Of a stretch of DNA of 64,000 bases, positions 6,576-62,410 are shown in pieces. Each line of letters starts with the position of its first letter. Within the stretch, counting starts at the first letter, position 1. The notes beneath the pieces are model-generated. The model saw nothing but the letters and a program-made list of their open reading frames with translations, did no database searches and was not told the DNA's origin. Source of the stretch: Octopus bimaculoides (taxonomy: Eukaryota); assembly GCF_001194135.2 (NCBI RefSeq), contig NC_068984.1, positions 19,388,678 to 19,452,677 of the forward strand. The letters are read 5' to 3'. The translations under genes were made by a program, and so were the position numbers.

Positions 6576-7372
6576 CTAGGAATAATAACACTTTCATTAT
6601 ATACAGCTCTTTAATAGTATATAATAGTTAATTATGAGAATTGATGGGGGTTGGGGGCAGATATTAACGAATCTACAGACATTGGGAATCCCAGAGGGGA
6701 TGACAGGGGGCTGAGACCTCTGGTGATTTGTTGATTGAAAAGATGTGTCAAGCTAAGTAAAAAGCGTGGTTGCCCTTGCATAACAGGCTCATCTCCTGCA
6801 ACCCTCCCTAGCTGAGCAGCCCTAATCATATGAGTTCATAGGTGCTGGTGCCATGTAAAAAGCACCCAATACACTCTATAAAGTGGTTGGCATTAGGAAG
6901 GGCATCCAGTTGTAGAAACCATGCCAAAACAGACAGGGAGCCTGAACAGCCCTTCAGCTGATCAGCTCCTGTCAAACAACCCAACCCATGCCAACATGGA
7001 AAACAGATGTTAAATGATGATGATGATGATGCAGGTATGGCTGTGTGGTTAAGAAGCTTGCTTCGCAACCATGTGCTTCTAGGTTCAGTTCCACTATGTG
7101 GCACCTTGGGCAAGTGTCTTCTACCATGGCCCTGGACCAACCAATGCATTGTTAGTGAATTTGGTTGATGGAAACTGTGTGGAAGTCTCTTGTATAATGT
7201 ATGCATATGTATCCCCACCACCACCACTCGACAACTTGTGCTGGTTTGTTTCCATCCCTATAACTTAGTAGTCTAGCAAAAGGGACTGATAGAATAAGTC
7301 CAAGACTTAATAAGTACTGGGGTCAGTACTTATTATTATTGTTGTTACTGTTGCTATGATTGCTGATGTTGA

Positions 7373-8655: not shown

Positions 8656-9813
8656 CTAGTATGGTAGGTAAATAGGAGATAAAATATTTTTACTCAAACA
8701 TAATACACATATATATTACATATATACATACATGATATACATATACTTTAAATGTATTTAGATATATATATATACTATATCATTTATATATATATAACAG
8801 CACCAAACAGTGATTAGAAATAAACAAACTTAAGGTTTGTTAAAATATGTTTATGATATATTTTAACTTCTAAAAGCAAATTCTCTGCAGTTACCACGGG
8901 GAAAAAATTCTCTCTTATGGTAAAGATATTTCAACTGACCTAAAGTTCATTTATATATATGTATGTACACACACACACACACACACAATGTAGGTCTGTA
9001 AGTCCTGATTGAGCAGAAAATCAGTGTTTCCAATGCAGTACTCAACTTGAACTCCTGGATATCTACACTCACATTAGAATTTTGAGAGAAAGTTTTTGAG
9101 TCCACTATTTCAGGAAATTGAGGTACATTATTGATAAGAGCGGTGAGTTAGTCTTATGAAAAGTAACATATTACACAATTAAGAAGATGCAGAATGAATT
9201 TGGCACATCTCTATTATTAGTTGTAATTGTTTTGGTACCATTCTGTTTCTAATGCCCTTACATATAAATGATTTCATATGAAAATATAACAGCTCACATT
9301 TTGATTCCAGTCTGATGAAGTGCCCCTCCAATATAATCAACTGTAATTTTTCACATGAAATCATCTACATGCAATGGCATTAGAAATGGAATAGAACTGG
9401 AACAACTACAAAATCATTCTTTGTCTTCTGAATTGTATGAAAACAAGAACTTGTTCCAACCATTTCCCTTGTACTTTAAGTCCCAACTAACATACTGAGG
9501 CAACATTCTCCCTCCCTTGGTTTGTTGACTTGTAAGTTATTAAATGACCTCACTGGTGCCAATGGCATGAAAAAGCACCCAGTACACACTGAAAAGCAGT
9601 TGGCATTAGGAAGAGCATCCAGCTGTAGCAACCTTGCCAAAGCAGACAGGGACGTATGATGCAGTCCTTGACTCATTGAATCCTTGTCAAACCATCCAAC
9701 CCATGTCAACATGGAACATGGACATAAAATGAAGATGATTATGATGGTGATGATTATGATCATTGTACAAAAAAATGACAGTAAAATAAAAATAAAAAAT
9801 AGTTTAAACTTAC

Positions 9814-14253: not shown

Positions 14254-15600
14254 CTGTCAAACAAAATAACAAAAAGTAAAAAAAAAAAAAGGAAAAGAGA
14301 ATTGTGTCTTATTTAGTCCATAGCTTTAGTTTCATATTTTATTCATTGGCTAATGAAATCATTATGGAGGAAAGACAGAGCTTGAGGGAAAACATTGTAC
14401 AGGAATATACTTCTAAATTTAACAGCCCAAGATAAGCTAATGATAGAAAATTTAGTATTGCTGAACTATATAAGGTAAAATTATGTGAATGACTGCAGAA
14501 TGTATTCCTGTCAATAACATTTAAAGAATCAGTCTTCTTACTGGACACAGGCATGGCTGTGTGGTTAAGAAGTTTGCTTTGCAACTGCATGGTTCTGGGT
14601 TCAATCTCACTGCTTGCTACCTGGATTAGCTAATGCTTTCTGAGAGGAATATGGGAGGTAGAAACTGTGCAAAGCCCATATATGTATATATATATATNNN
14701 NNNNNNNTATATATATACATATATATATTGGGAATCCCTGTAATCTACAATTCCATTCTTCACAAATTGCTATATAAAATAAATAATTGATAAATATATG
14801 AAAGTTAATAGATAAATATCAAGGAAACCAGAATATCTTACATTTTAAGAATGAATAACCCTTGATATATTTGTTCTGTAAAGAGTTACAGGCACTCTTT
14901 TGTTGTTCTTACTGTTGAAAATGTAGTGAGCCAGTGACAGGCCAACTGGAAACTTGTAATCTATAATGCTATTGTTCACAAATTGCTACATAAAATAAAT
15001 AAATATCATCATAATGATTTCATGCCCATGTTCCTTGTTTGCATGAGTTGGATGGTTCAATAGGATCCAGTGGACCCAAGGACTGCATCATGTGCTACTG
15101 TCTGTTTCTGCATGGTTTCTACACCTGGATACCGTTCTTAAATGCCAACCACTTTACAACATGCTGTGGGTGCTTTTTGCATGCCAACCAGCAGTAATGA
15201 GGATGTCATGCACTTTGTAAGACTACAATCTTTGAATAAGGAGGAGGAATTTTAATCTAGATGAATATGTGGTAGAGAGGGGTAAAGTATGAGAGAAAGG
15301 GCTGAAGCAGAACAGGATTCTTGTTGTAGTGGAGTAACATGATAACTCCCATTTTAGAAGAGAGGGTGTAGTGGGAGAGTTTGAAAATGATAAAAAAAAG
15401 TGGTGATGAGGTATCAGAGTAGACCTTCATGGTATGAAGTGGGTAGGAATGAATTTGGGCAGGGGTACCAGGAGCGAGTGGGTGGAATAGGGGATGTCTG
15501 ATAGTGTGGAGAGGTGGGTGGGTGGCAGAACAGACATAATTATACACTTAAATAAATAATGATTAAAACAGAAATATACAAAATAATTTTTGCTTTTTAC

Positions 15601-15784: not shown

Positions 15785-17809
15785 CTGAAAACAAAAACAC
15801 ATTATAGATCAATCACTATTGAATTTTAAATAATCAATCAATATCTATTATTTTATTGGTTTCAGTAATTAAACTACAACCATACTGGGCACTGGCTTCA
15901 AAGATTTTTCATGTTTCTAATCTGTTTTATTGACACACCCACCTCCCTAGTACTTATTTCTGCCTGGTACTTATTTTGTCAATCTCTGTTTATTGAATCT
16001 CTAAGTTACACTCTGACATAAAGAGATACAACTAGTCACATTGGTTAACACAAATTGACACCCATACATATGTATATACACACATACATTAATGACAAAC
16101 TGGATGTTATCCACATGGGTGGGTAAATAATTTCTTTTGATAGAATTAAATAGCTTGATATCATAGTTTTCATGTGAATACACTTGCATTGAAACCTCTG
16201 GTATTGGACAATTGAATGTCACACACACACACACACACACACACAATGGCCTCCAATGCAGTTTCCATCCATCAAACTCTGTTCACAAAGAACTAATTGA
16301 TCTGAGGCCACCATAGGAGAAACTTGCCCAAGTTATTGTGCAATGAGATTGATCCCAGAACCCTATACTGAGAAGCAAACTTCTTAACCATGAGGCTAAA
16401 GTCTGCACCTATATTCAACACACCTATATTTATATGCACCTATATTTATATGTTATATCATGTTGATCATTAGCTACATAAATGAAAGAAAATGTCTATT
16501 CTGAGAGTTGAAAGTTATTGCATATTTAGTTCCTGGAAAATATCACACCCCTTTTCTTTTCCTTTTTTTTTTTTTTGTTATAACTTGAATAATAGAAAGA
16601 TACAATTTTGTTTTAGAAATTTGTACTCAGTGTATATTAGAACAGTTTGAAGTTTTAGAACTTATCTTTTAAGTCTTCTACAATGATATATGAGTTTGAC
16701 ATCTGTTCCTGGTGTTGCTTTGAAATTCAGAATAGCTGACAGAACTTAAAATTTGCTCAACAGTAAGATCACTTTAAAAAGATGGTCACTTTTTTTTTCT
16801 GTTATATACTTTATATTTTTTCACTACTTTATAATTCATGACTGACAGAACTTCCATGTGACAACTAAGTTCCATTTAGTTGTCATATGGAGAGATGCTA
16901 ATAAAATAAAAAAAAGTGATTGCGTTTACAACTATTTTCCCAATGCTAATATAAGCTGGACAGATCTATGTGACTTCCTCTCATCACTTGGCTACACCAT
17001 CAGTTCTCATTCTATAAAAAGTCACATTTTTTCCTAGTTTTCTTTGGAATGTTTTCTCAAATCATCAATTAACAATATTTTCAAACACAATGTTATAAAC
17101 AATGAGGAAGCTGCTTTGTGGTCACTTAACTTACAAAAAACTGTAACCAAATTCACTCCAAACCATATCTTAAAACTGAACCAAGGAAGGGCAATATTAT
17201 CCAATATGTCACAAGAAACTGACTCAACCCAAATAAAAATATATTATATATATACACAATCTGTAAAGTAGTTAGGGTTAAGAAGGGCTTCCAGCAATAG
17301 AAACTATGCTGAAGCAGACAATTTGTTAGTTCCCATCAAAGCATTCAACCTAAGCGAGCATGAAAAACAGATGTTAAATGCTGCTGCTGATGTCAATGAG
17401 ATATTCACACACACATGCACATGGTTTTAGATTCAATCCTACTGCATGGCACCTTGAATAAGTGTCTTCTAGCATGGGCTCTGGCCCAACCAAAGCCTTG
17501 CGAGCAGGTAACGTAGACAGAAATTGAAAGAAGTGCATTGTATATATGTGTGTGTGTGTGGGTGTGTGTAGATAACAAAATGATATATATATTTCATTAT
17601 ATGTATGTAAAGTACAACCCACTAAGTAGCCAAGAAATAACCTGGAACATCTGATGGGAGCTAAAAATGCACCATCAGAAGGAACCAGCCTTGGCATTTT
17701 GCTCAGAGAAATTCAGTATCTGCCTGGATATTATATCCCTCTTCTTACTATACATATATATACATACATATACATACATACATATATATATATACACACA
17801 CAAATATCT

Positions 17810-18070
17810 GGCTTGTGCGGGTGGCACATAAAAGACACCATTTCGAGCGTGGCCGTTGCCAGTATCGCCTGACTGGCCTTTGTGCAGGTGACACGTAAAA
17901 GCACCTACTACACTCTCTGAGTGGTTGGCGTTAGGAAGGGCATCCAGCTGTAGAAACTCTGCCAAATTTAGATTGGAGCCTGGTGTTGCCATCCGGTTTC
18001 ACCAGTCCTCAGTCAAGTCGTCCAACCCATGCTAGCATGGAAAGCGGACGTTAAACGATGATGATGATGA
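17810..18070 (+). mobile_element. (GAT)n-tailed retroposon (family C; other copies ~390-440, 6640-7030, 9550-9750, 25370-25560, 38508-38690, 46140-46290, 49345-49660)
   Basis: Shared ttggcgttaggaagggcatccagctgtagaaac...ccaacccatgctagcatggaaagcggacgttaaacgatgatgatg; (GAT)n end conserved, other end variably truncated. Confidence 0.8.
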
Positions 18071-18105: not shown

Positions 18106-18357
18106 NNNNNNNNNNNNNNNNNNNNNNNNNNNNNNNNNNNNNNNNNNNNNNNNNNNNNNNNNNNNNNNNNNNNNNNNNNNNNNNNNNNNNNNNNNNNNNN
18201 NNNNNNNNNNNNNNNNNNNNNNNNNNNNNNNNNNNNNNNNNNNNNNNNNNNNNNNNNNNNNNNNNNNNNNNNNNNNNNNNNNNNNNNNNNNNNNNNNNNN
18301 NNNNNNNNNNNNNNNNNNNNNNNNNNNNNNNNNNNNNNNNNNNNNNNNNNNNNNNNN
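18106..18357. other. Assembly gap (others at 14698-14707, 27238-27247, 34877-35044, 38448-38466, 62071-62290)
   Basis: Runs of n. Confidence 0.99.
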
Positions 18358-26038: not shown

Positions 26039-26249
26039 TTTGATATCGTTCACCCTTTTGCTGGCATCACTGACCAGATAGGAAATATTGTTATCTTGAC
26101 TAGAAATATGATTGGACATTTCTTTGAGCCAGGCCAATATACCGTCGACTTGGTTTTTGAATTCTTGAATCGACTGATCATTGGTACTAGTGGCAAATAG
26201 CTGCTTATTGGCTCTTGTGGCCAATTCATCACACTTTTTCTCTGCACAT
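26039..26249 (-). CDS. Spectrin-repeat gene exon (R)CAEKKCDEL...LAWLKEM...VNDIK, phase 2-0
   Basis: Acceptor gttatctag|A, donor AAA|gtaagt, 211 nt. Confidence 0.9.
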
Positions 26250-27076: not shown

Positions 27077-27300
27077 TACGAGGGGGTGCTGAGAAGTTTC
27101 TGGCTTTGGGTAAAAGGAAATACAGGAGGATCAGTTAATTATGATTTTATTCAACATATTCCTCTCTCAGATTCACACACTTATTGTAGTGGTCTTTCAG
27201 TTTTTCTAAGCCTTGTAAAAGAACTCAGAAGGTTGGGNNNNNNNNNNTGGGCTTCCAGCCAGGCTTTCCATGATGCCCTTAAAGCCAGCACCCCTTCGTA
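27077..27300. mobile_element. Mariner-type MITE
   Basis: TA-CGAGGGGGTGCTG ... CAGCACCCCTTCG-TA terminal inverted repeats with TA target duplication. Confidence 0.8.
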
Positions 27301-27335: not shown

Positions 27336-27454
27336 CTGACTTTGTCATCCACCAGTTGTACATCATGGATGCTGAGCGTTTTAGTGATGGTTTCCTGTTT
27401 AGATTTAATTTGTTTCAGCTTGTTGCTGCTTGACTCAAGTTTATGAGATAGTTT
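27336..27454 (-). CDS. Spectrin-repeat gene exon KLSHKLESS...VDDKV, phase 0-2
   Basis: Acceptor ctttgcag|AAA, donor CAG|gtgagt, 119 nt; AG+A gives Arg at the junction with 26249. Confidence 0.88.
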
Positions 27455-34631: not shown

Positions 34632-35044
34632 ATACTCTTTACTCTTTTACTTGTTTCAGTCATTTGACTGTGGCCATGCTGGAGCACCGCCTTTAGTCAA
34701 GCAAATCGACCCCAGGGCTTATTCTTTGTAAGCCTAGTACTTATTCTATCGGTCTCTTTTTGCCAAACTGCTAAGTTACGGGGATGTAAACACACCAGCA
34801 TCGGTTGTCAAGTGATGGTGGGGGGACAAACACAGATACACAAACACACATACATACACATATATATATATATATANNNNNNNNNNNNNNNNNNNNNNNN
34901 NNNNNNNNNNNNNNNNNNNNNNNNNNNNNNNNNNNNNNNNNNNNNNNNNNNNNNNNNNNNNNNNNNNNNNNNNNNNNNNNNNNNNNNNNNNNNNNNNNNN
35001 NNNNNNNNNNNNNNNNNNNNNNNNNNNNNNNNNNNNNNNNNNNN

Positions 35045-38440: not shown

Positions 38441-39386
38441 ATATATANNNNNNNNNNNNNNNNNNNTATATATATATATATATATATATACATATATATC
38501 TATATATCATCATCATCATCATCATCGTTTAACGTCCGCTTTCCATGTTAGCATGGGTTGGACGATTTGACTGAGGACTGGTGAAACCGGATGGCAACAC
38601 CAGGCTCCAATCTAATTTGGCAGAGTTTCTACAGCTGGATGCCCTTCCTAACGCCAACCACTCAGAGAGTGTAGTGGGTGCTTTTATATATTTATATGTA
38701 TATATACAATGTGCTTCTTTCAGTTTCTGTCTACCAAATCTCCTCACAAGGCTTTGGTCAGCCCAAGGCTATGATAGAAGACACTTGCCCAAGGTGCCAC
38801 GCATGCGACTGAACCCTGAACCATGTATTTGGGAAGCAAGTTTCTTACCACACAGCCATGCCTGAACCTATATATTTGTGTACACACACACACACACACA
38901 CACTAAAAGATAAGATAGTCATCACTTGCAGGCATATATAACTTTGTAACACATGTACCTTGCTTTCACTAATTGTTTTAAGGTTCTCTGCTGTTATGGG
39001 TACACAGAGGCACCCTCTTGGCTCTCCCACCCTTGCCCCAGTGGAATATCCAACATGTAATAGCTGGAAGGAAAGAGGGATGCACACACACTAGGCTAGT
39101 TCTCATACTCAGTCAAACTGACTGAAGTATCTTGCTCAAGGATATAATGAGCTGCCTGGTTCAGGAACTGAACTCACAACCTTCTGATTACGAGCCCAAT
39201 ACCTTAACGATTAAACTATCTATCTTCAAACATGCACACACACACACACACACACACAAACATAAACAGATTGAGAAAGAGAAATATAATTATTCACCAC
39301 ATGATTATGTTAATTATGTTATAATTAATATACATTAATATTATGTTAATTATGTTATAATTAATATACGCTAATATCCCACTTAC

Positions 39387-39482
39387 TTTCCTCTTCGGTC
39401 TCCTCTTCTTCGGGGCTTGCCCAGAGGCATATCCATAGCGTGAGTGTTTCCTCTTACCTGTACAACTCTGAGCAATCCCCAT
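39387..39482 (-). CDS. Candidate first coding exon MGIAQSCTGKRKHSRYGYASGQAPKKRRPKRK, 32 aa, phase 0; second donor at 39458 (phase 1)
   Basis: Consensus donors AAA|gtaagt and CAG|gtaaga; in-frame TAA three codons before ATG; no AG in the ~60 nt upstream; locally CpG-retaining non-repetitive sequence. Confidence 0.6.
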
Positions 39483-40624
39483 CAAGATTTACGGAGGTGG
39501 CCAGAATGTGACAAATAAATGAATGAACAATAACTTAACGACCTTTTAACAACATCGTTGTCTAATACCGGCTTCCTCCTCTCACTACTCCCTACCACAC
39601 TTTTCTCCCCTCTAACACATTCATAATGTCAAACAAATTTTGCACGCATACACATGCATATACATGTGTGTATGTGTGTGTGCACGCACACGCACACACA
39701 CACACACAGATACACTTCAGAGTAGATATACATTGTTAGAAAGTTATACACAAGTGTTGACATCAACATTGATGACCCACCTTTAGTTTTGAACTTTTTG
39801 GAAAGATAGTAAATAGACTTTGGTCATTTAAATAAAACAAAAACAAAACTGTCACCACCACCACCACCACTACAACAATACAATCACTGAGTCGGTGGGT
39901 AAGGCCCTATGTATAGTTCAACATATTAGAAACAGCAGTCAAATCTAGCTCACACCACAATCTAAGTGTTAAGAAAAGAGGGATACATTGAATAATGTAA
40001 TCTGATAAAAGTATAGGATAGTCAAGGCTGGAATGACCTTTGATCAAAGATCTGCCTGCTCATGGTTGACCTGGGGTTAAACAACAACAACAACAACAAC
40101 AGTATACAATGCAATGAATGAGAGAACTTCAATATGGTTTCTTGATCTGCTAGAAACAGTAGGTGAGTCTTTAAAATTATAATCTACAGTCTTTAAAAAT
40201 TAGGAGATACTAAATAATGCTGTCTGGAATAACAGTTAAATCCCCTCTAAATCATATTCTGTCACCTTAAAAACAGGAAGGATAATTTGAATAATGTAGA
40301 TACCCCTAAAAACACAGGCTGGTCATGTTTTTTGTTTTATTATCTACACAGACAGGTGTGAAAATGCACCCAAAATCCCTTGAGACTCATTTCAACCCAA
40401 GGACACCAGATTTGTTTTGACACACTTGTTTTATAATTCTTGACTCTCATCAACATTATAACAAAACAACTAAACTTCCTTCTTCCTGGTTCTTTTCTAG
40501 AAAGCTTTAAATCTAATATTCAGATTGCATGGAGCTATTTTATGGTTTCCTACTTCCTTTTTCTATTTCTATTCTTCATGTTAATAATAATAACAATGAC
40601 GATGATGATGACGATGACGATGAT

Positions 40625-41232
40625 AAGGGAACACAAACCACCTCCAGTGCTTGAAAATGATCACATCTCACTCTTCTGGAACTTCACCATTCAAACTGAC
40701 AGAAAGATAGATGCAAATAAGCCAGACATTATATCGAAAGACTTCAGACAAAAATCATGCATCCTTATTGATATGACTGTCCCAACTGACATAAACATAT
40801 CTGTCAAAACCTACAAAAAACTGAGTATAAACATCTTGAAATAGAAACTGGCAAAATGTGGAACCTCAAGACTAAAACAATACCTGTTATCATAGATGTC
40901 CTAGGAATGATAGCAAAAGGGGCTGATTTCTACCTAGCTCAGATACCAGGAAACCCCAAAATGGTAGAAATTCAAAAGATAGTGCTCATGGGAACTGCCC
41001 ATATCCAATGTAAAATACTGTCTATGTAATCTCAAATTTTAAAACAAACTTATAATTTTCTTAAACATTCTCTAGAACAATATCATGTGCAAAACCAAAT
41101 ATATGACACTTGAGGTATAACACCAACATGAACTTCTAACTTGTTGTCTCCTGAGGTCTCTGGGTGATACTTGGAGTCAACTTGTACAAATGTAAAGCAA
41201 AAGTCGAACATATAATAATGATAATAATAATC
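40625..41232 (+). mobile_element. 5'-truncated R4/Dong-like non-LTR retrotransposon (restriction-like endonuclease domain and 3' UTR)
   Basis: VLENDHISLFWNFTIQTDRKIDANKPDI...LIDM...K..KY, then KTKTIPVII..LG; ends at a (TAA)n tail. Confidence 0.8.
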
Positions 41233-45179: not shown

Positions 45180-45830
45180 ATAAAAGTATCTTGAAATACT
45201 AAACAGTAAATTTATTCAATAAAATCGCCATTGGCGTCAACCAGACGACTTTGGAATCTCCTGCAACTCTTCTGGACGTTCTCCTTGTTTAAGTTGGTGA
45301 ATGCTGCCATAATCCTTGCCTTCAGTTCATCCTTGGTGTTACAAGGAGTTTTGTTGGTCTCTCGCCCAACTGCACACCACACATAATAATCAAGGGGGTT
45401 GTGGTGTGGGGAGTTAGGTGGCCAGATGTTAGCGGTCATGTTAGGGAAATTGTTCGACAGTCATAACTGGGTTCTCCTGCTTGCCTGGCGTGGGTTAGAG
45501 TCCTGTGCCAGAAATAGGGTCTTCCAGCAGCCACCCTCTTGACCCAGGGCAGCACTACCTCCTCTACACACTTGATGTAGGCCTCGGTGTTGAGTCTGAG
45601 GCCATGTGGAAAGATGAATGGAGGCATAACTCTGCCATCACTATTGAACACTCCAAACACCCTGATGTTGACTGGATGTTTGATTTTTATCACTCTCGGT
45701 ACATGTCCTCAGATTGATACCGAAACACTATGAAATGGTCATATTGGAGCTTCTGGCACGAATACCAAGCAGTACAGCACAACGTTTCCAAATTTCTGAC
45801 AGAGTGAATTGTATCATGGTGCTGTTTTTC
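45180..45830 (-). mobile_element. Decayed Tc1/mariner transposase, maT/DD37D-like; frameshifted
   Basis: ORFs 45436-45693 (VFGVFNSDGRVMPPFIFPHGLRLNTEAYIK..EEVVLPW) and 45212-45439 (WPPNSP..NPLDYYVW...KDELKARI). Confidence 0.85.
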
Positions 45831-49350: not shown

Positions 49351-51032
49351 GGGACCAAAACTCCTGGCAGTTTGCTGTGCTTGAAAAGACTTGTCAAGCT
49401 AAGTAAAAGCATGGTTGCTCTTGCATACAGGCTTATCCCTTGCAACCCTCTCTGGCTGAGCATCCTTAATCTTGTGGACTTGTAAGTGTTGGTGCCACAT
49501 AAAAAGCACCCATGCCAGTGCTGTGGAAAAGCAGCTAGTACACTCTGTAAAGTGGTTGGCATTAAGAAGGGCATCCAGCCATAGAAACCATGTCAGAACA
49601 GCCATGGAACCTGAACAGTCTTTCAGCTGGTCAGCTCCTGTCAAACCATGATGATGATGATATATATTTATATATGATTAAAAGCTCTGTTCAGATATTC
49701 AATGAAACTTTTAAAGGGTTGTAAAACTCAAGTGCTTGTAATTCCAGCACTGTATAGGAGGACTCTGAAATTTTGTCTATGCTCAGTAGAAAATATAATC
49801 AAAAATATAAGGAGTTGTGTATTACAAAACACGTGTATATTAATTTGAAAGTGAGTATACAGCTATAATTATCTCATATTTGAAAATTATTTGAAATAAA
49901 AATAAACTGAAATATTTCATTCCAGTTAAAAACAGATACATTTTTAATATGTCTTTAAAATGCCTTTCAATATGTCTGTGAATGGAATGTTTGGTTGGTT
50001 TGTGGGGATTGCAATATATTACAGGAATTTTTTAATCAGTCATTTTCTATTTAAAATTTTTTGAAATCAATATGCAGAGAGTGGAATATTTTCAGCTTTG
50101 TGGATTGAGTGAAAGAGAATAATTTTCTTGTATTTATAGACACTACCAAATACCATTGACAAAGTTTGAACTTGTGAATTTCTTGCATCGACAGTCCAAT
50201 ATCTCATATGTAATGTCATTCTGCCTACTTGATGTTATTTGTGTAACAAAAAATACCCACACATCACAAGAGTGAATAAATAAAATCATGGAAATGAATT
50301 TCTAAAATCCACAAAGGATATGAATGTCAGAATATATTAATAGTAAAATAATGTAAATTAAACACCATTCTCAGCAGTAATCAATCAAGGATAAAAGAAT
50401 TTTTGCAGAAAACATAAAATATTGATAATTGTCATAATTTTTCAACATTATGTAGAAAATCAAAGGTTTTGATGAAATTTATTTCATGTGGCATTCTAAA
50501 AATTATCAAACGACTGACTTATGTTCCACCACAAAAGGTGTTCAATAAATGATTTGAAAAATATTGTATATTGTAAAAATTAAAAACAAACAAAGAAAAA
50601 AGGTCTTAGTTTACTGCATTGAAATTAGGATCATATAACACAGAGAATTGATTTTCTATAAAATATATAGAATATTATTGTAAACAACCCTTCTAGAAAT
50701 AGAAAACAAAAATATTTCTTTACTTTTCAAGAGCATTATAAATATAAAAAAAATATTGCCATGAGTTAATAACATGCTCTTGAATGGAATGTATCATCAA
50801 CACAGTATAGATAATATTATTAGGTACCCTGTTATTGTTCTCTTACAGAGAGCAAAGGGGCCTATAAAAGCTTTGAATATAAGTTAGTAACAATAAAAGT
50901 ATCAAAATATCTCAAGTGTTCTATAAAAGACCAGGATGGAATGTTTAGACAGTAAAGTGTACTCAATTTTATCAATACACAAGTATTATATAAGTGTGTA
51001 TTCAAGTGTGTGCATATATTTATTGATATACG

Positions 51033-61180: not shown

Positions 61181-62410
61181 TATACACTCAACAGATTAGA
61201 CTGTTGGAAAAGAAAAGAATCCTAACATCGGGCGATAACAAGTTAGTTGCCTTAGATGCCAAGAACCCTCCTAAGTATCTTAGCTGTCCTTAATAACACT
61301 GTTTTCTGGAGCTGTACTAAACTGGGTTTTATGCCTATTTCCTCTATCCATCTGTTCAGATCTTTAGGAATAGTTCCCAATGCACCTATAACTACCTATA
61401 ACATTTTACCCACACTTTCCATAGTGTGTCATTCAGCAGCTAGGTCCTGGTACTTTGCTATTTTTTCTATACCGCTCATATCAATTTTCTCATCATTTGT
61501 GAATGTAAAGTCAATTATCTGGCACTTTCTATTCTCTTTATCTACTACTATCAAATCAGGCCTTCTAGCTTCTATTACTCTGTCAGTCTGAATGTTAAAG
61601 TTCCACAACATCTTGTACTTCTTATATTCTAGTACTTCACTAGGTTCATGTTCTTACCATTTATCAGTATGTTCAAATCTTAGCTTTCTACATTGCTCCC
61701 AGTGAATTGCTCTCCCTATATTGTCATGTCTTTTCTTGTATTCTTTCTGTGCCAGCATGCTACATTCACTTACTGTATGAGTAACGCTTTCCTCTTTTGA
61801 TTTTCATAATCTACATTGGGAATCTACTTGGTTTTTGTCTATCTTGGCTTTTATCCTATTAGTCTTTAATGCTTGATCTTATGCAGCTACTAAGAAACTT
61901 TCTGTCTCCCTCTTAATGGGAATCTACTTGGTTTTTATCTATCTTGGCTTTTATCCAATTATCCTTAATGCTTGATCTTATGCAGCTACTAAGAAACTTT
62001 CTGTCTCCCTCTTCATTTTTTCCTTTCTGCAGCCATAACCATGTCTCACTACTACTATTTGCTGAAACTGNNNNNNNNNNNNNNNNNNNNNNNNNNNNNN
62101 NNNNNNNNNNNNNNNNNNNNNNNNNNNNNNNNNNNNNNNNNNNNNNNNNNNNNNNNNNNNNNNNNNNNNNNNNNNNNNNNNNNNNNNNNNNNNNNNNNNN
62201 NNNNNNNNNNNNNNNNNNNNNNNNNNNNNNNNNNNNNNNNNNNNNNNNNNNNNNNNNNNNNNNNNNNNNNNNNNNNNNNNNNNNNNNNNTTTTCCTTTCT
62301 GCAGCCATAACCATGTCTCACTACTACTATTTGCTGAAACTGTCTTTGGAAATCTACCATGCAATGCCTTCTGCCAGTCAGATAATTTCTGTTATTTTTT
62401 CTGATTTTTA
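61181..62410 (-). mobile_element. 5'-truncated R4/Dong-like LINE, second subfamily; spans an N gap
   Basis: LWNFNIQTDRVIEARRPDL...IIDF...EKIAKYQDL (PD-(D/E)xK nuclease) and HGRF...WLQKG...ETESFLVAA upstream; 3' end abuts (TAA)n. Confidence 0.85.

Follow-up and report, generated by a model that had tools for sequence, protein, structure and literature searches.

A candidate lipid-anchor first exon before a spectrin-repeat-like rod gene in Octopus bimaculoides, with a counterpart in a second genome

RESULTS

A short candidate first exon upstream of a rod gene

The window analyzed here is a 64,000-nucleotide (nt) stretch of Octopus bimaculoides contig NC_068984.1 (forward-strand positions 19,388,678 to 19,452,677; coordinates below are counted within the window), on the minus strand of which a series of exons, marked by clear coding potential and by splice sites, extends from 27454 to 4221. 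Upstream of this series lies a short open reading frame (ORF), at 39482-39387 on the same strand, that an earlier note on this DNA had proposed as a hidden first exon, supplying a myristoylated, palmitoylated and polybasic N-terminus to a spectrin-repeat protein. We identified the orthologous locus in a second genome and found there a counterpart of this ORF matching in place, strand and splice phase; on this comparison, the ORF is probably a genuine first coding exon.

Read and translated from the minus-strand ATG at 39482-39480, the coding part of the candidate exon has 32 codons, MGIAQSCTGKRKHSRYGYASGQAPKKRRPKRK. Its start reads ATG GGG, with glycine directly after the initiator methionine, followed by Ser6, Cys7, and a KRK at residues 10-12 within a basic cluster. 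The terminal codon AAA at 39387 is followed by GTAAGT (39386-39381), giving a phase-0 donor, AAA/GTAAGT (slashes mark exon boundaries), that scores 3.8 bits under a generic donor matrix, the same score and sequence as the donor of a real exon of the rod gene at 26039. An in-frame TAA (39491-39489) lies three codons (9 nt) 5' of the ATG, with no AG dinucleotide from this stop to the ATG, and since the reading frame cannot be extended 5', the ORF would be a start exon, not an internal one. The ATG, the upstream stop, the AAA/GTAAGT donor and the lack of a nearby acceptor were all exactly as the earlier note had described them.

The core around the ORF (39274-39657) is present as a single copy within the window and is bordered by (TG)n microsatellites (39226-39273 and 39658-39717). 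Seven CpG dinucleotides place 39381-39640 in the top 3% of 260-bp windows (window CpG observed/expected ratio, 0.23), in agreement with the unique, CpG-retaining flanks reported previously, and we infer that the segment 5' of the ATG (39483-39657, minus strand), unique in the window and retaining CpG, represents the 5' untranslated region and proximal promoter. Directly 3' of the donor, 39304-39375 consists of a tandem duplicate of an AT-rich 36-nt unit (94% identical, partly self-complementary).

The proposed splice partner and the rod exons

The proposed splice partner is the next conserved exon, 27454-27336 (minus strand, as are all exons named here), which is 119 nt long and begins KLSHKL... 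after a phase-0 acceptor, ttgcag/AAA CTA TCT; joining it to the following exon (AG/A) fixes its frame. That following rod exon (26249-26039), which encodes (R)CAEKKCDELATR...NDIK and ends in the donor AAA/GTAAGT, has 51% identity with its second-genome counterpart (E = 1e-21). Based on coding-potential peaks, splice sites and a weak Pfam Spectrin match, 11 further rod exons were placed between 22198 and 4221, at 22198-21881, 20717-20595, 19071-18868, 18680-18537, 15771-15601, 13604-13302, 10161-9814, 8655-8530, 6575-6399, 5091-4993, and 4451-4221. The assembly has gaps (runs of N) at 14698-14707, 18106-18357, 27238-27247, 34877-35044, 38448-38466, and 62071-62289; the one at 18106-18357 spans 252 nt, follows closely on exon 18680-18537 and could hide sequence. 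The gene takes up the lower half of the window and continues past its low end.

The products of the rod exons show the tryptophan-marked heptad look of spectrin repeats. Pfam Spectrin (PF00435) matched the octopus exons with 28.4 bits (E = 2.4e-6), which is under the 29.9 threshold, and the orthologous ORF of the second genome carried the Pfam mark 'Spectrin (faint)'. A sequence search of the PDB with the octopus exons alone gave no match, and a profile built from both species gave weak matches to alpha-spectrin (E = 0.004) and utrophin (E = 0.06). One exon was modelled as two long helices (predicted local distance difference test score, 80.6), although such helices fit any helical rod. Taken together, it is reasonable to regard the host protein as a spectrin-repeat-like rod.

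The nesprin identity suggested by the earlier note is not supported, as no CH or KASH sequence was seen among the exons of the window and no named homologue was found by word-indexed protein searches or in the PDB. In addition, 861 amino acids of downstream exons matched no CH or plakin domain in Pfam, 1369 amino acids of exons had no match in public protein collections, which lack the proteins of this species for this gene, and no record was found for the octopus read-through ORF. Our literature search found nothing on the candidate peptide and nothing relevant on nesprin in octopus.

The orthologous locus in a second genome

The second genome (ENA ERZ21867824, contig ctg100540l) was reached from exon 22198-21881, which alone served as query for an exhaustive HMMER search that returned two ORFs, from ctg100540l and from Logan runs ERR12370320/1; JGI metagenomes yielded no additional relatives. 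We read 35.8 kb of the 77-kb contig in overlapping pieces (L001 to L003). Seven exons are collinear between octopus and the second genome (E = 1e-3 to 1e-21; 42% amino acid identity overall), including 5 of the 11 rod exons between 22198 and 4221. Exon boundaries are the same in both genomes where read, and the orthologue of exon 18680-18537 is the only one that went undetected. The orthologue of exon 27454-27336 is again 119 nt long, with a phase-0 acceptor, tttttag/AAA TTA TCA (KLSSKL...), and an AG/GT donor as in octopus. Introns and flanks could not be aligned between the genomes, indicating that neutral sequence has been randomised between them.

The Logan ORF related to exon 22198-21881 (P0006) leaves the genomic read-through after ..ERQKK (ELSETSPR.. 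versus NCQV..). Splicing of a transcript, another donor or a sequence variant could account for this divergence.

The earlier note had suggested a tblastn search for conservation of Gly2, Ser6, Cys7 and the donor. Applied to this one genome, BLAST proved blind, with neither tblastn nor tblastx giving the peptide a significant match at the second locus, but a scan for motif plus splice phase recovered a counterpart. Among the frames opening with ATG-GGN in the 20.3 kb 5' of the exon 27454 orthologue there were 11 ATGGG sites, one of which is the counterpart, MGNNLSCACGNQKRKI (L002 4905), on the same strand and ending ATA/GTAAGT in phase 0. It lies 8.7 kb from the orthologue of exon 27454, versus 12.0 kb between the octopus ORF and exon 27454. 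Its start codon, reading ATG GGT in the context gagacATGG, has a G at -3, with an in-frame TGA lying two codons 5' of it, and its peptide has Cys9 in addition to Cys7, with KRK at residues 13-15. Thus, the two sites have in common M-G-x3-S-C with Ser6 (AGT/AGC) and Cys7 (TGT), KRK, GTAAGT, phase, strand, and the upstream in-frame stop. Both G-I-A-Q-S-C and G-N-N-L-S-C fit the myristoylation pattern G-{EDRKHPFYW}-x(2)-[STAGCN]-{P}, each with the favoured Ser at position 6, so that the N-myristoyltransferase consensus and nearby cysteine pointed out in the earlier note are found in both genomes. Outside the motif, the flanks of the two sites share no conserved nucleotide sequence, and the survival of the motif while introns and flanks have become unalignable implies selection.

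Each site also has an upstream ATG. In octopus, a 6-codon upstream ORF (39555-39535, minus strand) lies 73 nt before the start codon, and in the second genome an out-of-frame ATG lies 7 nt before the start, overlapping it (L002 about 4898). These ATGs matter only if transcription begins further 5'.

The two predicted spliced products remain basic across the junction, reading ...PKRK-KLSHKLESSSNKLKQIKSK in octopus and ...KRKI-KLSSKLSKSRKKIEDVKVR in the second genome. In each, the basic cluster is prolonged by the K-rich beginning of exon 27454 (KLSHKL..KLKQIKSK in octopus, KLSSKLSKSRKK in the second genome). This bears on whether the ORF is instead a real exon of a small nested gene, a non-coding RNA or some other transcript that is syntenic with the rod gene and not joined to exon 27454. 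A stronger donor within the ORF (39457-39452, CAG/GTAAGA), which is in phase 1 and so misfits exon 27454, would suit such a transcript. However, neither genome has a further conserved coding block between the first exon and exon 27454, and a phase-0 donor faces a phase-0 acceptor in both; with the continued basic cluster, this makes another transcript very unlikely.

Could the counterpart be a coincidence?

The simplest alternative is a chance ORF, in which an intronic or intergenic ATG in octopus precedes 32 open codons and GTAAGT by accident, and the MG...SC ORF of the second genome is coincidental. We estimated the chance of such a counterpart from 3,000 simulated 20.3-kb strands. The myristoylation pattern with a phase-0 donor within 8-45 codons occurred in 4.2% of strands (0.042), the same with at least three K/R in 1.3% (0.013), and MGxxx[ST]C with a phase-0 donor in 0.03% (0.0003). 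When both strands of the window and of the second locus were taken together, about 200 kb of real sequence, the two sites described here were the only matches.

Within the window itself, ORFs of this general kind are common. An ATG with at least 15 open codons leading to a donor of equal or better score was found 47 times, versus 39 ± 8 times in third-order Markov simulations, and nine such cases with at least 20 codons lie on the plus strand, where no gene lies. Requiring MG and the PROSITE myristoylation pattern lowered the expectation to 0.33 per window (0.16 with Ser/Thr at position 6), and requiring at least six K/R in addition lowered it to about 0.01 per window. This last figure is optimistic because the Markov null under-counts purine tracts 12-fold, those like CCGAAGAAGAGGAGACCGAAGAGGAAA being 12 times commoner in the real window than in the simulations.

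Several observations weigh against a real exon, and some of them are what a chance ORF would predict. The basic tail is a low-complexity purine-rich tract, and equally basic open frames occur at 16 non-exon loci. Codon usage resembles that of non-coding DNA, the log-likelihood ratio of the 32 codons being -10.7 (mean of the non-coding null, -8.6); trained on exons of the same gene, the measure ranks 98.8% of real-exon windows above the candidate. At the octopus ATG the -3 position of the Kozak context is T. The internal phase-1 donor at 39457 scores 7.3 bits versus 3.8 bits for the phase-0 donor, and its splicing to acceptor 27454 would produce a dead-end product that stops after four codons. 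The second-genome exon has 16 codons versus 32 in octopus, so that the counterpart covers only the first ~12 residues, and CpG enrichment is absent at its site. In the simulations, the donor cut-off of 1.5 bits was chosen after the hit at 1.7 bits had been seen. The comparison rests on one further genome, and the peptide joined to the downstream exons had no match in public protein collections. Finally, the exon is a prediction from two genomes, and lipidation is predicted for both by sequence rules.

The octopus-only half of the exon, GYASGQAPKKRRPKRK, is the low-complexity purine tract that contains PKKRRPKRK, which had been read as an SV40-type nuclear localization signal. As this half is missing in the second genome, the comparison gives that reading no support.

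From the window alone, before the comparison, the chance that the ORF is a real exon was near a tenth. Even with the loosest of the chance figures for the counterpart, the likelihood ratio raises that estimate to about four-fifths. The counterpart is right in place, strand and phase, with a chance of 0.0003 to 0.04 of arising by coincidence, the within-window rarity is about 1% besides, and no other such site occurs in about 200 kb. A chance ORF is therefore unlikely.

Transposon remnants and other repeats

CpG retention and bordering microsatellites could also be accounted for by a fragment of a young transposable element or a recent insertion. Most other CpG-rich patches in the window are transposon remnants, (TG)n repeats flank the core on both sides, and a fragment of a long interspersed nuclear element (LINE) lies 1 kb away on the plus strand. 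On the other hand, there is no second copy of the core in the window, no Rfam match anywhere in it, and no nucleotide similarity to the second genome past the motif, and a transposon fragment would not be expected to occupy the orthologous position with a matching splice phase in a diverged genome. We rejected this origin on the uniqueness of the core in the window and the lack of flank similarity in the second genome, and regard it as the least probable of the explanations considered.

Other repeats were observed across both loci. LINE-type ORF2 C-terminal remnants are found at 61255-61836 (minus strand) and about 40640-41100 (plus strand) in the window and at L002 2240-2941 in the second genome (..FNIQTDR..ALGTIPK..), with about 50% identity between the window and the second genome, and a reverse transcriptase adjoining the gene in the ENA assembly has over 1,300 near-identical copies (1,357 returned). 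Two neighbouring open frames (45215-45708, minus strand; ..NIWPPNSPHHNPLDYYVW..) make up one of the CpG-rich patches and resemble a mariner/Tc1-type transposase in its C-terminal half. Both strands carry copies of a short interspersed repeat with ..FLQLDALPNANH.. and ..HLPKVP.SGTEP... in its translation (6826-7227, 9476-9763, 17675-17992, 38581-38865, and 49399-49644). Some of its copies overlap CpG-rich patches, which suggests recent insertion.

The region upstream of the candidate exon

The only upstream coding exon in the window is large and serine/glutamine-rich (58193-56340, 618 codons; to 56337 with its TAA). It opens at a good phase-0 acceptor, ccacag/CCA, and had no Pfam match and no database relative. 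It closes in frame with ...EEILK-TAA (56339-56337), 30-35 nt upstream of an AATAAA (56307-56302), and its terminal GT (56340) is in phase 2 and incompatible with the phase-0 acceptor at 27454; weak phase-0 GT sites (CTT/GTAATG and AAA/GTGACT) occur slightly further inside. This exon could terminate a neighbouring gene, or else supply the rod gene with an alternative 3' end. In a coding-potential scan of the minus strand from 56.3 to 27.5 kb, no coding-like segment was found besides the candidate region. Because exon 27454 requires an upstream phase-0 donor, the phase-2 GT and TAA of the large exon lend suggestive support to the candidate exon.

These observations do not favor the internal promoter of a CH-domain nesprin that the earlier note had envisaged. 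They raise the question of whether the candidate instead opens a separate gene here as its principal first coding exon, with 58193-56340 as part of an upstream neighbour or an alternative 3' end. Apart from the TAA, AATAAA and phase-2 GT of the large exon, and the lack of a coding-like segment between it and the MG exon, this is consistent with the absence of a large-exon homologue within 11.5 kb 5' of the second-genome MG exon and of an acceptor with a good pyrimidine tract directly before the ATG in either genome. Against it, the host gene uses weak donors elsewhere and could do so at the weak phase-0 GTs near the end of the large exon, upstream exons could lie outside the window, and AATAAA is common in AT-rich DNA. 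We find a separate gene quite plausible, at a little short of an even proposition. It refines the reading of the ORF as a first coding exon and does not contradict it, and the candidate could equally be the principal 5' end of the gene as an internal start.

A further exon had been proposed between the candidate and exon 27454, at 32971-32879 (minus strand; MEDGCKWLDDKISETILVPAGGFVLIKEKDH), as a second possible splice target. With a weak pyrimidine tract (ttataaag/), a donor reading GTATGC and nothing corresponding to it in the second genome, it is probably no exon. The phase-0 fit of the candidate to acceptor 27454, as had been claimed, was confirmed and is conserved, whereas the fit to 32971 is left without support.

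DISCUSSION

These results suggest that 39482-39387 is probably a genuine first coding exon that would place a Src-type myristoyl/palmitoyl/basic N-terminus on a spectrin-repeat protein. The core idea of the earlier note thus gained support from the orthologous locus, while the nuclear localization signal, exon 32971, the nesprin identity and the internal promoter found no such support.

If so, the first exon would be spliced from 39387 to 27454, Met1 would be removed from the product, and N-myristoyltransferase would acylate Gly2. Once on membranes, Cys7 (plus Cys9 in the second genome) could be S-palmitoylated, and the K/R-rich stretch, running into the K-rich start of the next exon, would bind acidic lipids electrostatically. 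Myristate reinforced by electrostatic attraction of a basic stretch is the arrangement of Src-family Src-homology-4 (SH4) domains, of MARCKS and of Src, and such an SH4-type anchor would fix one end of the rod to the cytoplasmic face of a membrane.

Expressed as predicted, the product would be a long spectrin-repeat rod whose hold on a membrane depends on fatty acids, with neither an actin-binding nor a transmembrane domain in that role. From the persistence of the motif in a protein otherwise diverged to 42% identity, membrane attachment can be argued to be central to what the protein does, and the locus offers a testable case for the targeting of rod-type cytolinkers. We consider it doubtful that the gene is a KASH nesprin whose dual-lipidated basic N-terminus anchors the rod, at its far end, directly in the plasma membrane or in some other membrane. 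If that were true, nucleus and membrane would be tethered without any need for an actin-binding domain, an arrangement kept in two lineages at 42% rod identity.

The counterpart also illustrates that a short, fast-evolving first exon that is invisible to BLAST can be recovered by splice phase and motif at an orthologous position. RNA-based annotations of octopus may already hold the exon.

Short unique first exons driven by internal promoters are known from nesprin-1 alpha-2 and from dystrophin Dp71, Dp116, Dp140, and Dp260. As proposed here, these isoforms splice few to about 30 unique residues in frame to spectrin-repeat exons; unlike here, their N-termini are not lipid anchors. The peptides themselves resemble in design the SH4 domains of the Src family and similar dual-acylated N-termini (Lck, Fyn; also Src and MARCKS, with myristate and a basic cluster), with which they share Met-Gly, Ser6, a cysteine within ten residues and an adjacent K/R cluster. 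There, the region is joined to SH3-SH2-kinase domains, whereas here it would be joined to a spectrin-repeat rod, and the likeness is one of functional analogy and not of membership, with no homology beyond the motif.

Among spectrin-superfamily giants, dystonin-a3/b3 (BPAG1a3) has an alternative first exon with a putative conserved myristoylation motif before a single CH domain (PMC3352950, PMC6975176), and potential palmitoylation sites have also been mentioned (bioRxiv 10.1101/122010). Like the protein predicted here, dystonin-a3 would gain a lipid-anchor N-terminus from a dedicated 5' exon, and its putative anchor replaces a full actin-binding domain. The architectures differ in that the octopus anchor would join the rod directly, with no CH or plakin domain in the 861 downstream amino acids and a Spectrin match that is weak. 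A lipid-anchored nesprin N-terminus, of which the earlier note knew no example, had in fact been predicted already, since the human nesprin-1 variant p931KASH(Nesp1) has a unique N-terminus with an ELM-predicted N-myristoylation site (Rajgor et al. 2012, PMC3388047). It too is a spectrin-repeat rod isoform with its own 5' end, but the prediction there concerns a single species, whereas here the motif is conserved in two diverged genomes together with a cysteine and basic residues. The lipid-anchor-exon design thus has precedents, putative ones, and the octopus exon would carry the putative motif of dystonin-a3 and the single-species prediction for nesprin-1 p931KASH into a second phylum.

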